Shown here in pieces: positions 22,153 through 31,421 of a stretch of DNA of 64,000 nt. Every line of letters begins with the position of its first letter. The first letter of the stretch is position 1. Source of the DNA: Zancudomyces culisetae HAW-14-8 (taxonomy: Eukaryota; Fungi; Kickxellomycota); the NCBI GenBank assembly GCA_052426225.1, contig JBNJNM010000012.1, positions 2,170,001-2,234,000 of the forward strand, given 5' to 3'. Below the pieces are notes generated by a model. That model was not told the origin of the DNA and made no database searches. It was given only the letters and a program-made list of their open reading frames with translations. The position numbers and the translations under genes are program-made.

Positions 22153-25100
22153 ATGGTTAATAGATTTAATCTCGGTGAGCAAGAGCTATTCGTGAGAGAA
22201 GAAGAGGATTTTGAAATCGAAAATGGAGCTGGAGAAAATTTTCTGGTGGGTAGCTTTATAAATCTGGAAAGTGGACTCCGAGTGGTTGTTTGTAAAACTA
22301 CAGGACTTTTGAGTCAGCTAAGTATAGTTGTACCAACGGTTTCGTACAATGAAAAGGGATTACCACACACTTTAGAGCATCTAATATTCTGCGGTTCCAA
22401 AAAATACCCATTTAAGGGGTACATAGATGTGCTTGCGTGTAAAAATTTGTCATATGGGACTAATGCATACACCGCACCTGATCATACGAGCTATACATAC
22501 GAGACCGTTGGATTGGAGGGCATAAGTAAGGTGGCAGCAAAGTTCTTGGAGGCAGTGGTAGATCCAGCGTTAGAAGATAATCATTTTGTGACTGAGGTTT
22601 ACCATTTTGATGGAGACGGGAAGCAAAAGGGTGTAGTGTATAGCGAAATGAAATCTGTGGAGGATACCGAATACGAAAAGCTTGATCAGGAAGTTAGAAG
22701 AATCATGTATGGAGAAAACTCGATCTACTACTACGGAACTGGTGGCCTAACAAAAGATATAGCACAGGCAAGCAATAAAGAGATAATTGAATATCATTTT
22801 CAGGAATACCAGAGAGCCAAAACTACAGTTTTAGTTGTTGGTGGGGTCGGAGAAGATCTTGGAGAGTTTTTTGAAGAGCTGCGTGAGTTTGAATATTTAT
22901 TTAAGAAGAGGGAGGAGCGTGTTGTTGAAAAGAAGAGGAACGATGTGGCAGTGCTGCAAGAAAAGGTGCAATATAGAAAAGTGAAATTCAGCTCGGAGAA
23001 TGAAGAAATAGGATCAGTTAGTTGTAATTGGATTGGCCCAGAGATAATCGACATAGAAACAAAGACAGCACTGAATATAATGAGCATGTATATGGTGGAA
23101 AACGGGGAGTCTGTATTGAACAAGAGGTTTGTGGAAACGGAAGAACCACTAGCCAACCATATTGCTGTGGAAGTAAGTGAGTACGTACCCACATGGCTAT
23201 CAATACATTTTGAAGGAGTTGAATTGGGTGAAAACCGGGATATGGGTAAGGAGTATTATGAGATGCTTATTGAGGAGCTGGAGACAACAATCAGGGAAAA
23301 GATAAGCATCGACGAAATGAGAAGGTTGATTGAGAGATTTAAGCGGAACTATTATGTGCTGCTTGAAGGATCGGAGGTGGATGTAATGAATGGGCAAATA
23401 ATAAACGCTATACTAGAGCAAAACTATGGGGGAAATAGCAGAAAAGGTAATAGTAGCTTGGCGAGTTTGATCAAAGAGTCAACCAAGATAATTGAAACAA
23501 TAGACAAACTATACCACAGTGAGATTGACTATTGGAAGGAACTGGTTAAGAAATGGTTTATTGATAATAAATGTGTAGTGGTTGTGATGGAACCAGATCA
23601 GGAACTGACTGACAAGATACGAAAAGAGGGAGAGGAATATGAAACTGAATTGCGAAAAAAGTGTTCACCTGAATATGAAAAAAACCTGCGCGAGGTAATT
23701 GAAAAGGTTAACAACAGTAAATTGCCTGAGAATATTGTGCAGGAGATAATAAACAGTAAACAAAAGAGAGAAATCCCATTGCCATTTAATAGCAACTATG
23801 GGAGCGGAGACTGTAAATATATTGAGATACTATCACACCAGTTTTATACGATAAGTGTGTACATCCCAATGGAGCGGTCAGAGTTTAATCTATACATTCC
23901 GCTACTTGAGGCGTTAGTTTTCAATTCGGATATAATAGTCAAAGATAAAATAATCAAGTACGAAGATCTAGTCAAAAGGCTTAGTGAGATAAGCGTCAGT
24001 TACAGTAGCAGTATGGGATCGCTGATTTCAGGTAGATCGGATATATTCCAAACGCACTATCCAACAAATGTGGTTCAATTGGGGATTACAACAACGAAGG
24101 AGCATCTAGACGAATGTGCAGAGATTCTACAAAACTGCTTAAACATCAGCTTTGACAAAACCAGGATCAAAACCGTCGCCAAACAGATAAAAACGAGTAT
24201 ACTTGAAAGCAAAAACAATGGTGGGTATATTCTGGATTGTATAGTAAGTACAACCTTGAATAAAGAGAAAGGTGGAATTTCAAAAGACATTTTTGATCAA
24301 GAAAGAGTAATTGGGCAGATTATTCGGTTGCTTGAGAAAGAAGATGGAGAGGAGGGTGACCAGGCACACGAGAAAGATGGGGAAAATACAGAGTATTATG
24401 ACGATACCAGCGAGGCTGATGTTGAACTTGGAGCTGAGGGCGAGTGTGAAGGTGAGGGTGAGGGTGAGGATGGTACAGCCGAAAAGAACGATATTCTAGA
24501 TGTTTGTTGTATGGACCAGGTAATCAATAATCTTAACCTGCTTAAAGCAGAGATTTTGAGGTCATTGGAAGAATCTGGCTATTACCAGTATGGATATCCA
24601 AAGTCAAAAACATCTAGTGGGGGCGAAGAAAATAGCAGTAGCAATAGTAATAAAAAGCTGATGGAAGATATTGATTCAAAGTACAATAAGGCCAAACGAG
24701 AAAAAATATTTGACCTTGACAAAACTAAGTTCGCAGTTAAGGGCAAGCAGGAGATAAACTTTACATTGAAAAACATCAACACAACATGTGCAAGCTTTAT
24801 CATACAAGTAACACAAAACGATGTGTCAAATCATATTGAGGAAATGATGGGTCTGAAAATCCTGACATATATTCTGGGTGGTAGGGTAGATGGGGTTCTG
24901 TACAACTTGGTAAGGGGAAATGGGTATGGGTATGGAGTCCATTCGTACTACAACATCGTAACAGGGTTGCTGACGATTAAATACACCGAAATCACATCCT
25001 CACAGTACAAAAATTGTGTGGATCAAGTCCACCAGTTAATATCAAAGCTTATTGATAGTGAGGAGTATTTCTACTCAGTAGTGAATGAGCTGGAGCTTCA

Positions 25101-25446
25101 GCTTGCCAAGTCAAATATTATATACTCTTCATGTTACCTCTCGACGCTAAATAGTTCTAGTGGAAGTAGTGGTGGTATTGGTGGAGGAAGTAGTGCGATT
25201 AGCGGCAACAATCTTCTAGCATTGCTTTTGGAAATCCAGTGTTTCTGGTCGTCGTACATCAACACATCTACGACCTCGGCTACAACAGGTATCGATTTGA
25301 ATGTCTTTTTGACCTGGTTTAAACAGCAGTTAAACTCTATTGATTTGCAAACTTTACGGGCATGCTTTGTACGGCATTACTCTCATTTCTTAAGTGCAAA
25401 TTACTTGAATGTGGTTGTCTCTCCACCAGCCTTGTCATCATCTTGA
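22153..25446 (+). CDS. M16 (insulinase family) zinc metallopeptidase, presequence-protease-related
   Basis: GLPHTLEHLIFCGSKKYPFKG (HXXEH), GTNAYT, EVYH...GVVYSEM, LYNLVRGNGYGYG. Intronless, 1097 aa. Confidence 0.9.
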   Translation: MVNRFNLGEQELFVREEEDFEIENGAGENFLVGSFINLESGLRVVVCKTTGLLSQLSIVVPTVSYNEKGLPHTLEHLIFCGSKKYPFKGYIDVLACKNLSYGTNAYTAPDHTSYTYETVGLEGISKVAAKFLEAVVDPALEDNHFVTEVYHFDGDGKQKGVVYSEMKSVEDTEYEKLDQEVRRIMYGENSIYYYGTGGLTKDIAQASNKEIIEYHFQEYQRAKTTVLVVGGVGEDLGEFFEELREFEYLFKKREERVVEKKRNDVAVLQEKVQYRKVKFSSENEEIGSVSCNWIGPEIIDIETKTALNIMSMYMVENGESVLNKRFVETEEPLANHIAVEVSEYVPTWLSIHFEGVELGENRDMGKEYYEMLIEELETTIREKISIDEMRRLIERFKRNYYVLLEGSEVDVMNGQIINAILEQNYGGNSRKGNSSLASLIKESTKIIETIDKLYHSEIDYWKELVKKWFIDNKCVVVVMEPDQELTDKIRKEGEEYETELRKKCSPEYEKNLREVIEKVNNSKLPENIVQEIINSKQKREIPLPFNSNYGSGDCKYIEILSHQFYTISVYIPMERSEFNLYIPLLEALVFNSDIIVKDKIIKYEDLVKRLSEISVSYSSSMGSLISGRSDIFQTHYPTNVVQLGITTTKEHLDECAEILQNCLNISFDKTRIKTVAKQIKTSILESKNNGGYILDCIVSTTLNKEKGGISKDIFDQERVIGQIIRLLEKEDGEEGDQAHEKDGENTEYYDDTSEADVELGAEGECEGEGEGEDGTAEKNDILDVCCMDQVINNLNLLKAEILRSLEESGYYQYGYPKSKTSSGGEENSSSNSNKKLMEDIDSKYNKAKREKIFDLDKTKFAVKGKQEINFTLKNINTTCASFIIQVTQNDVSNHIEEMMGLKILTYILGGRVDGVLYNLVRGNGYGYGVHSYYNIVTGLLTIKYTEITSSQYKNCVDQVHQLISKLIDSEEYFYSVVNELELQLAKSNIIYSSCYLSTLNSSSGSSGGIGGGSSAISGNNLLALLLEIQCFWSSYINTSTTSATTGIDLNVFLTWFKQQLNSIDLQTLRACFVRHYSHFLSANYLNVVVSPPALSSS

Positions 25447-29549: not shown

Positions 29550-31421
29550 ATGAGTTTTTCAATAAACGCTTTAAAGTCGTATGTAAGAAATCGGGCATTA
29601 GCTCGTTCAGTTGTAGCTCGGAGCGAGCTGGTGCGTTTGGCCTCAAAAGTTGATCAAATCAAAACCATTACCACAACCCAAAGTAGAAGAATCAATCATT
29701 CCCAGAAAAATGCACTTTCGACAGTAAATCGGACTCGAGAAAATGAAAGAAATCAAAAAAATGGATCTAAACTCAGAGACGCGTTTATCTTTTTCGGATT
29801 TTCGATCATTGCTGGAAATCTAGCCATTCTTTGCAATCAAAAACTAGAAAACAGGGGCGCTGAAGAAAAAAAGAAAGCGAACGTAAGAGAATTGTGCTTT
29901 GTGGTTTTAAACAACGACGTAAAAGCTCTGAAAGAACTACTGAAAAGGTATCCACAAACAGACTTGAACGAAAAGCACCCGCTGGGATGGACAGCCCTAC
30001 TTGTAGCCACAGCAAACGGTAATATCGAGATGGTTCGGGAACTGCTTAAGCGTGGAGCAGATCCGAAAAGTGTTGACGATTTTAGTGTTTCTTTGGAACG
30101 AGGAAATATTAGAGATGTTCAAGAACAGTACATTCAGCGTGAAAGGGAGTTCAGCTCATTGATTTATCCCAGTGCACCGACACTTGGGTTTTCGCCCTTG
30201 CACTATGCCTGTGTTAGCGAAAACATCGACATGATAAAACTACTGATTGAGTATGGCGCCGACCCTAGAGTACTAGATAAACAGGGAAACCATCCTGGAA
30301 GATACGTCGAAACTGATAGTGAAAATTACACGCAGATTATATCGCTCTTGGAAGAGGCTAGTGTTAAAGCTGAGCAGGAAGAAGCAAGAAGAAACAAGGA
30401 AAATCGACGTATATTTCCACTAGAGAAAAGGCTAGAGACCGTGATAGTTGGACAAAAAGCACCTATTGAAGCTGTTGCATCGGCAATAAGGAGAAAAGAA
30501 AATGGCTGGAACGAGGAAGAAAGACCTCTTGTATTTCTTTTTTTGGGGTCTTCAGGAGTCGGAAAGACAGAATTAGCAAAACAGGTAGCAAAATATCTAC
30601 ACTCAAACGAAGACTCGTTTATACGAATAGATATGTCAGAGTTCCAAACCAAACACGAAGTATCCAAGTTTATTGGCTCGCCTCCTGGATATGTCGGTCA
30701 CGATGAGGGTGGTCAATTGACAGAAAAACTTCGAAAAACTCCTAACGCCGTTGTTTTGCTTGACGAAGTCGAAAAGGCACATCCAGATGTATTGAATGTT
30801 ATGCTTCAGGTTTTTGATGAAGGTAGACTGACTGATGGAAAGGGAAAAACCATATTGTGTAAAGATGCGATATTTATAATGACATCAAATCTAGCTCAGC
30901 GAGAAATTGCTGAACAATCCCAAATACTAAGGGAGGAAGCCGAAAAGAATGAATTTACAAATCCATTGAAGGATGACTACAACTCACCTCAAAAAAAATT
31001 CATTAATCAAGTTATATATCCCATACTACGGAGTCACTTTAGAAGAGACGAGTTTTTAGGAAGAATAACCGAGATACTCTATTTTTTACCTTTTAACAGC
31101 CAAGAACTGCATATGATTGCTGAGAAGGAAATGGTAAAATGGGCGGAAAAGGCTTCCCAGCGACACCAAGTCAAATTAACCTGGTCAAACGATCTAATCG
31201 AACTTATCGTCAAGCTCGGATACAATGTTCATTATGGTGCTAGATCCATAAAACACGAAATTGATAAGCGCGTGATAAATCTGATTGCCAAAGCGCATGA
31301 GTATGATGAGTTTGAAAATGGTGCATCCATTCACGTTTATGTGGAGAATGGGAAAGTCAATCTTAATATTGATAAGACCAAAGGCGATAAGAAAAAGGCC
31401 ACTGGCTTTTTAGGTTTTTAG
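29550..31421 (+). CDS. CLPB: Skd3/CLPB-type mitochondrial ankyrin-repeat AAA+ disaggregase
   Basis: Arg/Ser-rich presequence, hydrophobic stretch, ankyrin repeats (HPLGWTALL, GFSPLHYA). Single ClpB NBD2-type AAA+ domain: GSSGVGKT, SPPGYVG, DEVEKAHPDV, DEGRLTDGKG, RDEFLGRI, YGARSI. Confidence 0.93.
   Translation: MSFSINALKSYVRNRALARSVVARSELVRLASKVDQIKTITTTQSRRINHSQKNALSTVNRTRENERNQKNGSKLRDAFIFFGFSIIAGNLAILCNQKLENRGAEEKKKANVRELCFVVLNNDVKALKELLKRYPQTDLNEKHPLGWTALLVATANGNIEMVRELLKRGADPKSVDDFSVSLERGNIRDVQEQYIQREREFSSLIYPSAPTLGFSPLHYACVSENIDMIKLLIEYGADPRVLDKQGNHPGRYVETDSENYTQIISLLEEASVKAEQEEARRNKENRRIFPLEKRLETVIVGQKAPIEAVASAIRRKENGWNEEERPLVFLFLGSSGVGKTELAKQVAKYLHSNEDSFIRIDMSEFQTKHEVSKFIGSPPGYVGHDEGGQLTEKLRKTPNAVVLLDEVEKAHPDVLNVMLQVFDEGRLTDGKGKTILCKDAIFIMTSNLAQREIAEQSQILREEAEKNEFTNPLKDDYNSPQKKFINQVIYPILRSHFRRDEFLGRITEILYFLPFNSQELHMIAEKEMVKWAEKASQRHQVKLTWSNDLIELIVKLGYNVHYGARSIKHEIDKRVINLIAKAHEYDEFENGASIHVYVENGKVNLNIDKTKGDKKKATGFLGF

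Follow-up and report, generated by a model that had tools for sequence, protein, structure and literature searches.

The window, a 64,000-nucleotide stretch of the genome of the Harpellales fungus Zancudomyces culisetae HAW-14-8, contains a gene whose product is, judged by its sequence, a true orthologue of Skd3/CLPB. We are confident that this gene was inherited vertically, that the ankyrin (ANK)-NBD2 fusion had formed by the time of the fungal-animal ancestor, and that many non-Dikarya fungi have retained it alongside Hsp78 and Hsp104, with an intermembrane space (IMS) mechanism modelled on that of human Skd3. Judged by its relatives, the locus is ordinary among early-diverging fungi and not peculiar to Z. 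culisetae.

On the + strand an unbroken reading frame opens with the ATG at 29550, closes with the stop at 31421 and encodes 623 aa. This single uninterrupted frame bears out an earlier note, made from the window alone, that had described the gene as intronless. Skd3/CLPB is a single copy gene in the Z. culisetae genome. The same frame is present in the older assembly GCA_001969505.1, with 1 substitution within the first 193 residues, and the two assemblies are 99.2% identical across 21 kb. The NCBI model for the older assembly has 463 aa and begins at an internal Met although the frame upstream is open. That truncated model lacks both the presequence and the hydrophobic stretch as well as the first ankyrin repeats. 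The gene and its features, in window positions, are as follows.

29550..31421, + strand: Skd3/CLPB orthologue, 623 aa, intronless (ORF, Pfam, PDB matches, copy count)
29550..29783, + strand: basic Ser/Thr-rich N-terminal region (residues 1-78), predicted mitochondrial presequence, low pLDDT (composition, AlphaFold)
29784..29834, + strand: hydrophobic sorting and putative auto-inhibitory stretch (residues 79-95), ending in Cys95 (hydropathy)
29853..29864, + strand: R-G-A|E, residues 102-105, candidate maturation site after Ala104 (motif position)
29883..30413, + strand: ankyrin domain, two repeat pairs with a linker between, plus a long helix into the NBD (residues 112-288; Pfam, PDB alignment, AlphaFold)
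30414..31373, + strand: single HCLR/NBD2-type AAA+ module with D2-small subdomain (residues 289-608; Pfam, NBD tree, AlphaFold)
30546..30569, + strand: Walker A (Lys339, human K387; alignment to human Skd3)
30687..30698, + strand: primary pore loop G-Y-V-G (Tyr381/Val382, human Y430/V431; alignment)
30756..30767, + strand: Walker B (Glu406, human E455; alignment)
30921..30998, + strand: Skd3-type NBD insertion (residues 458-483, human L507-I534 region; alignment)
31062..31064, + strand: arginine finger Arg505 (human R561; alignment)
31374..31418, + strand: short basic C-terminal tail with a terminal Gly/aromatic motif (comparison with homologues)

The neighbouring genes encode a RhoGAP, a RING-H2 protein, an M16 peptidase, IDO and a chitin synthase with cyt-b5 and DEK_C domains, and the contig is fungal. 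The GC3 of the Skd3 gene is 0.354, compared with 0.33-0.43 for its neighbours, and its GC likewise matches theirs. Host contamination as the source of the gene was ruled out by the neighbours, GC and GC3. The M16 family peptidase (1097 aa, 22153-25446, + strand) lies 4 kb upstream of Skd3 and is possibly of the mitochondrial presequence protease type. M16-Skd3 synteny was not seen elsewhere, and the surroundings of Skd3 showed no synteny with the Mycoemilia, Dispira or Mucor loci.

Pfam identified Ank_2 at residues 115-241 (E 3e-21), AAA_2 at 328-509 (E 1e-54) and ClpB_D2-small at 517-596, and neither a second AAA+ domain (NBD1) nor a middle domain was found in the Skd3 protein. The best PDB sequence matches were four Skd3/CLPB chains, with scores of 488-510 bits and alignments spanning residues 120-600. 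ClpB and Hsp104 structures scored about 207-218 bits (ClpB 218) over the NBD region only. The AlphaFold model has a mean pLDDT of 78.8 with a disordered N-terminus, and Skd3 structures were the first retrieved with it (E 1e-47). The ANK linker and the connecting helix can be aligned with Skd3 over their full length, and Tyr219 in the ankyrin domain corresponds to human Tyr272. Pfam, composition with hydropathy, and the PDB alignments thus agree with the Skd3 layout claimed in the earlier note, namely a presequence, a hydrophobic stretch, ankyrin repeats and one NBD2-type AAA+ domain, and all of the Skd3-type motifs it quoted were located in the protein.

By alignment, all catalytic residues are intact. 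Human residue numbers were taken from PMC9584538. Sensor-1 (Asn447, human N496) and sensor-2 (Arg565, human R620) are both preserved, and K339, Y381, V382, E406, N447, R505 and R565 are conserved. The human disease positions R408, R475 and A591 correspond to R359, R426 and A535 and are also conserved. The secondary pore loop is T-K-H here and E-R-H in human; the Lys is a conservative change common to invertebrate Skd3. R417A reduces the activity of human Skd3 (PMC9584538). The NBD insertion has a Skd3-type sequence and is 7 residues shorter than the animal version. The helical insert had been proposed as a mark of Skd3, which holds for its type of sequence but not for its length alone, since the loop from sensor-1 spans 50 residues in the window protein and a similar 49 in the Hsp104-like protein of the same genome.

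The C-terminal tail comprises 24 residues here compared with 29-54 in animals, and the extended acidic/basic C-terminal domain (CTD, human 660-707) is absent from the window protein. The human CTD is dispensable in vitro (PMC9584538). It was not counted as family-defining because it is an animal-specific accessory whose deletion leaves activity intact. A loose pattern for the Gly/aromatic tail matched 39/41 fungal rows, including the window protein, and 1/30 animal rows. On this comparison, animals have swapped the Gly/aromatic tail for a longer acidic/basic CTD. A G-W-F-type tail ends the non-animal Skd3 proteins of fungi, ichthyosporeans and rhizarians.

The best matches are zoopagomycotan fungi with 55-60% identity, above animals. 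The list is headed by Mycoemilia (60%), Dispira, Tieghemiomyces, Dimargaris and Gonapodya. Next come Paraphelidium, Hyaloraphidium, Neoconidiobolus, Entomophthora, Massospora and Rozella, intermixed with ichthyosporeans, a filasterean, choanoflagellates and animals. About 29 further proteins, from Mucoromycota (Mucorales and Umbelopsis), came from a profile search, and some of them carry the NCBI name 'caseinolytic peptidase B'. Orthologues were also found in monoblepharids, an aphelid, Rozella, unicellular holozoans, five euglenozoans and three rhizarian species. A search seeded with a euglenid match returned Euglena, Ploeotia, Diplonema, Namystynia, Astrolonche and Rhodelphis. The Diplonema gene is on a 107-kb contig, where it adjoins a SNF2 helicase gene. 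A Euglena mitoproteome table has an entry 'caseinolytic peptidase b protein partial' that is enriched in mitochondria; the transcript id of the sequence used here is not in the table, and the entry is only a lead. Smittium, Coemansia, Mortierella, Glomeromycota, core chytrids and Dikarya were not among the matches listed, in lists of up to 120 entries, which suggests loss in these groups. Because the listed distribution is patchy, a vertical model needs many losses.

Several of these sequences have peculiarities of their own. Of the two unlike copies in Nonionella stella, one alone groups with Reticulomyxa, and Rhodelphis marinus groups with Corallochytrium on a long branch. Both placements could be due to transcriptome contamination or transfer. 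Three public models seem to join Skd3 to a neighbour, adding metacaspase, MscL-like or UbiA domains; they are probably annotation fusions. In Gonapodya a caspase-family gene is directly upstream of Skd3.

The genome also encodes separate Hsp78-like and Hsp104-like proteins beside Skd3. Co-occurrence of Hsp78 was a check proposed in the earlier note, and the gene is there. The NBD2 of Skd3 is about 39% identical to that of the Hsp78-like and Hsp104-like proteins. A divergent Hsp104 paralogue (contig C11, about 3.98 Mb) is 29% identical to the canonical copy and sits on a very long branch; its NBD1 Walker A/B motifs are degenerate while those of NBD2 are kept.

The origin of the gene was examined with trees, topology tests and intron positions. 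In a mixture-model ML tree the window protein joined Mycoemilia (99/96), then Dimargaritales (99/97), then Entomophthorales (100/96), and a second, wider tree gave the same result. This branching order is the known order of Zoopagomycota. Of the two origins that had been suggested for the gene, ancient vertical descent is therefore the one that the gene tree favours, and transfer from an animal host did not survive the AU test, which rejected grouping of the window protein with insects (p 1e-58), of the window protein with Metazoa (0.005) and of Zoopagomycota with Metazoa (0.0003). Transfer from an insect host had some appeal, since Z. culisetae is a gut symbiont, a mosquito-derived polyubiquitin gene has been published for it (PMC5026252), and the Skd3 gene lacks introns. 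Beyond the AU result, however, the insects in the trees, with no dipteran among them, form their own fully supported clade, and the window protein has a fungal-type C-tail and shares with Mycoemilia a one-residue insertion near residue 558 that occurs only in these two among 21 rows. The sister gene, that of Mycoemilia, bears introns and the Dispira gene is intronless too. By this comparison the intronless state is a secondary loss, as in Dispira, and no sign of transfer. We consider an insect source for the gene extremely improbable.

Equally hard to credit is an independent fungal fusion of ankyrin repeats to the NBD2 of Hsp78 or ClpB, even though ankyrin repeats are promiscuous and fungi possess Hsp78. 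The earlier note had called for a tree of the AAA+ domain, and in an NBD-only tree 34/34 Skd3 rows, fungal and animal, fell on one branch with a support of 100 and a stem of 2.5, apart from the Hsp78-like and Hsp104-like genes of this genome and bacterial ClpB. With a single branch at 100 on so long a stem, a separate fungal fusion is for practical purposes excluded, and the end to end alignment of the ANK linker and connecting helix likewise speaks against it. Prokaryotic sequences were examined as well. Among the best 80 of 600 sampled prokaryotic loci no ankyrin-fused ClpB was found; these 80 match the NBD only (residues about 284-600) with at most 44% identity. In a quick tree the NBD of a Chlamydiales MAG (43%, the best prokaryotic match listed) was sister to Skd3 (SH-aLRT 96) across the 2.5-long stem. 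It is a possible, but not reliable, lead to a bacterial source of the NBD.

A third account has Skd3 arising a single time, whether in a holozoan or in some other eukaryote, and spreading to early fungi, Rhizaria and Euglenozoa by ancient transfers. Its patchy presence would fit, and so would the rhizarian rows beside Mucoromycota (93/82) and Rhodelphis beside Corallochytrium (95/92). In the wider tree, however, Holozoa (97/91, with the long Rhodelphis row within) and the fungal side (94/96) are separate, each near species-tree order within. Euglenozoa form one clade there (100/97); Rhizaria fall inside the fungal side, and the deep fungal branching order is left unsettled. Fungal monophyly was not rejected by the AU test (0.25). 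Intron positions, computed by script from proteins and loci, also bear on this point. A phase-1 intron at window residue 289 is common to Rozella, Gonapodya and Mycoemilia, and one at residue 383 to Mucor and Mycoemilia. The sponge Oscarella has two positions in common with a fungus, one of which falls where the alignment is good; taken alone, this is weak evidence. One of the two, at residue 535, is shared with Rozella. The Rozella gene has five introns of only 27-28 nt each. Taken together, we regard spread by ancient transfers as unlikely and retain vertical descent.

The age of the family follows a similar gradation. That Skd3 is at least as old as the opisthokont ancestor is well supported by these trees. 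Besides fungi and holozoans, Skd3 forms coherent clades in Euglenozoa and Rhizaria, and an origin in LECA is plausible from the sequences, although indistinguishable here from old transfers. As a tentative proposal, which we put at somewhat below an even chance, an ANK-AAA+ disaggregase of the IMS existed in or near LECA and was lost repeatedly, yeasts included; the ancestral form was probably matured by the inner-membrane peptidase (IMP) and had a Gly/aromatic tail, and activation by PARL and the long CTD would have been added in animals.

The N-terminus was examined for maturation signals. Mitochondrial targeting was predicted from composition and hydropathy alone: the first 30 residues carry charges of +6/-1, and the region ahead of the hydrophobic stretch +17/-5. 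The most hydrophobic 15-residue segment is residues 80-94 (mean Kyte-Doolittle 2.17). The stretch ends in I-L-Cys95, which resembles the x-x-Cys that closes the hydrophobic stretch in animals. Almost every full-length homologue retains a presequence and hydrophobic stretch. Ala104 precedes the first ankyrin helix by 10 residues, where fungi have the conserved V/I/A-x-A and animals the x-x-C, and its -3 residue is an Arg, off the fungal consensus. Motifs were surveyed in 87 sequences anchored on the first ankyrin helix. V/I/A/L-x-Ala was found 8-12 residues before this helix in 35/40 fungi, always with Ala, 29 of the 40 rows being related Mucoromycota. Neighbouring intervals have the same motif in only 7-14/40 fungal homologues. 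Among animals the motif occurs at that distance in 23/30, with Cys in 22, and there it directly closes the hydrophobic stretch, whereas the fungal motif sits several polar residues beyond and outside the hydrophobic segment.

Human Skd3 is cleaved by PARL at residue 127 (PMC7343390). The Z. culisetae genome encodes a PARL/Pcp1-like rhomboid with a presequence-like start, along with two S26-family peptidase fragments. Two near-equal rhomboid matches, C6:2214268 and C12:637629, have the same length and the same interruption on different contigs, possibly reflecting duplication or assembly redundancy. The fungal motif fits IMP equally well, and the "rhomboid-processed" system of the earlier note is only an inference. 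Enzymes of the signal-peptidase type have small residues at -1/-3, and a motif separated from the membrane segment by a few polar residues is the geometry expected of IMP. Maturation of this orthologue by IMP (Imp1/Imp2) rather than by a rhomboid, with PARL activation as an animal change, would account for the position of the 35/40 fungal motifs. IMP is also known to strip hydrophobic sorting signals (PMC8847149), and the two S26-family fragments would suit it. Against this stand the preponderance of Mucoromycota in the sample, the Arg at -3 of Ala104, the animal-like I-L-Cys95 and the rhomboid in the genome. Rhomboids, too, favour a small P1 residue, which counts against IMP. We therefore treat IMP maturation as a serious possibility that we do not quite favour. 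It is a variant of the mechanism and compatible with vertical descent.

Architecture, intact catalytic residues, orthology and descent are established here; the mechanism is borrowed from human Skd3 (PMC7343390, PMC9584538). By this analogy, the presequence would enter TIM23 and be cut by MPP, and the hydrophobic stretch (79-95) would arrest the chain in the inner membrane. A further cleavage, after either Cys95 or Ala104, would release the mature protein into the IMS, where it may assemble as hexamers or ANK-to-ANK dodecamers. Aggregated proteins of the IMS and inner membrane would then be threaded through the Tyr381 pore by ATP hydrolysis with no need for Hsp70, and Hsp78 would meanwhile serve the matrix.

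These results differ from accounts published between 2015 and 2026. Skd3 has been described as originating, under the name ANKCLP, in stem holozoans by Erives and Fassler (PMC4339202), as first appearing in choanoflagellates by Cupo and Shorter (PMC7343390), as absent from microbes by Lee et al. (PMC10090083), and as a metazoan acquisition in a 2026 preprint (PMC13232346). One of these four papers presents it as an answer to the growing complexity of the animal inner membrane. Our literature search, which most subscription papers lay beyond, found no report of a fungal or protist Skd3, and the supplements of PMC10406608 have no CLPB entry. Sequence databases openly contain fungal copies. The novelty of the gene had been said to vanish if orthologues were already well described across early-diverging fungi; they are indeed widespread there, but in the literature searched they go undescribed and the opposite is stated. 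That Skd3 occurs alongside Hsp78 in fungi, and also in euglenozoans and rhizarians, tells against the account of an animal innovation. Skd3 would have been a machine of a separate compartment long before animals, and no replacement for Hsp78. The published age of a human disease chaperone needs correcting, and the value of the finding is at the level of the family, not of the locus. Microbial models become available for the human disease gene CLPB (MGCA7, congenital neutropenia), whose product has HAX1 as its activator in human. Mucorales carry Skd3 and are genetically tractable, so that questions can be asked about its ancestral clients and protease.

The window protein was compared with three known systems. 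With the orthologues of Mycoemilia, Dimargaritales, Entomophthorales, Mucorales, monoblepharids, Paraphelidium and Rozella it shares architecture and clade, and it differs from other fungal orthologues in its long branch (0.57), its lack of introns and its lack of the consensus -3 residue. With Hsp78, Hsp104 and ClpB it shares a homologous NBD2, but these proteins lack ankyrins, combine two AAA+ rings with a coiled-coil middle domain and are Hsp70-dependent. The best structural match is human/vertebrate Skd3 (CLPB, 'ANKCLP'; PDB 7XBK, 7TTR/7TTS, 8ZR0). The two have the same domain order (MTS, hydrophobic stretch, split ANK, single NBD2), the same catalytic motifs and primary pore loop, an NBD insertion, and about 50% identity in the core. 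Unlike human Skd3, the window protein has an ANK linker of the short (isoform-2) type, a longer polar spacer after the hydrophobic stretch, 7 fewer residues in the NBD insertion, T-K-H in the secondary pore loop and a short Gly/aromatic C-tail in place of the long CTD, and it lives alongside Hsp78 and Hsp104.
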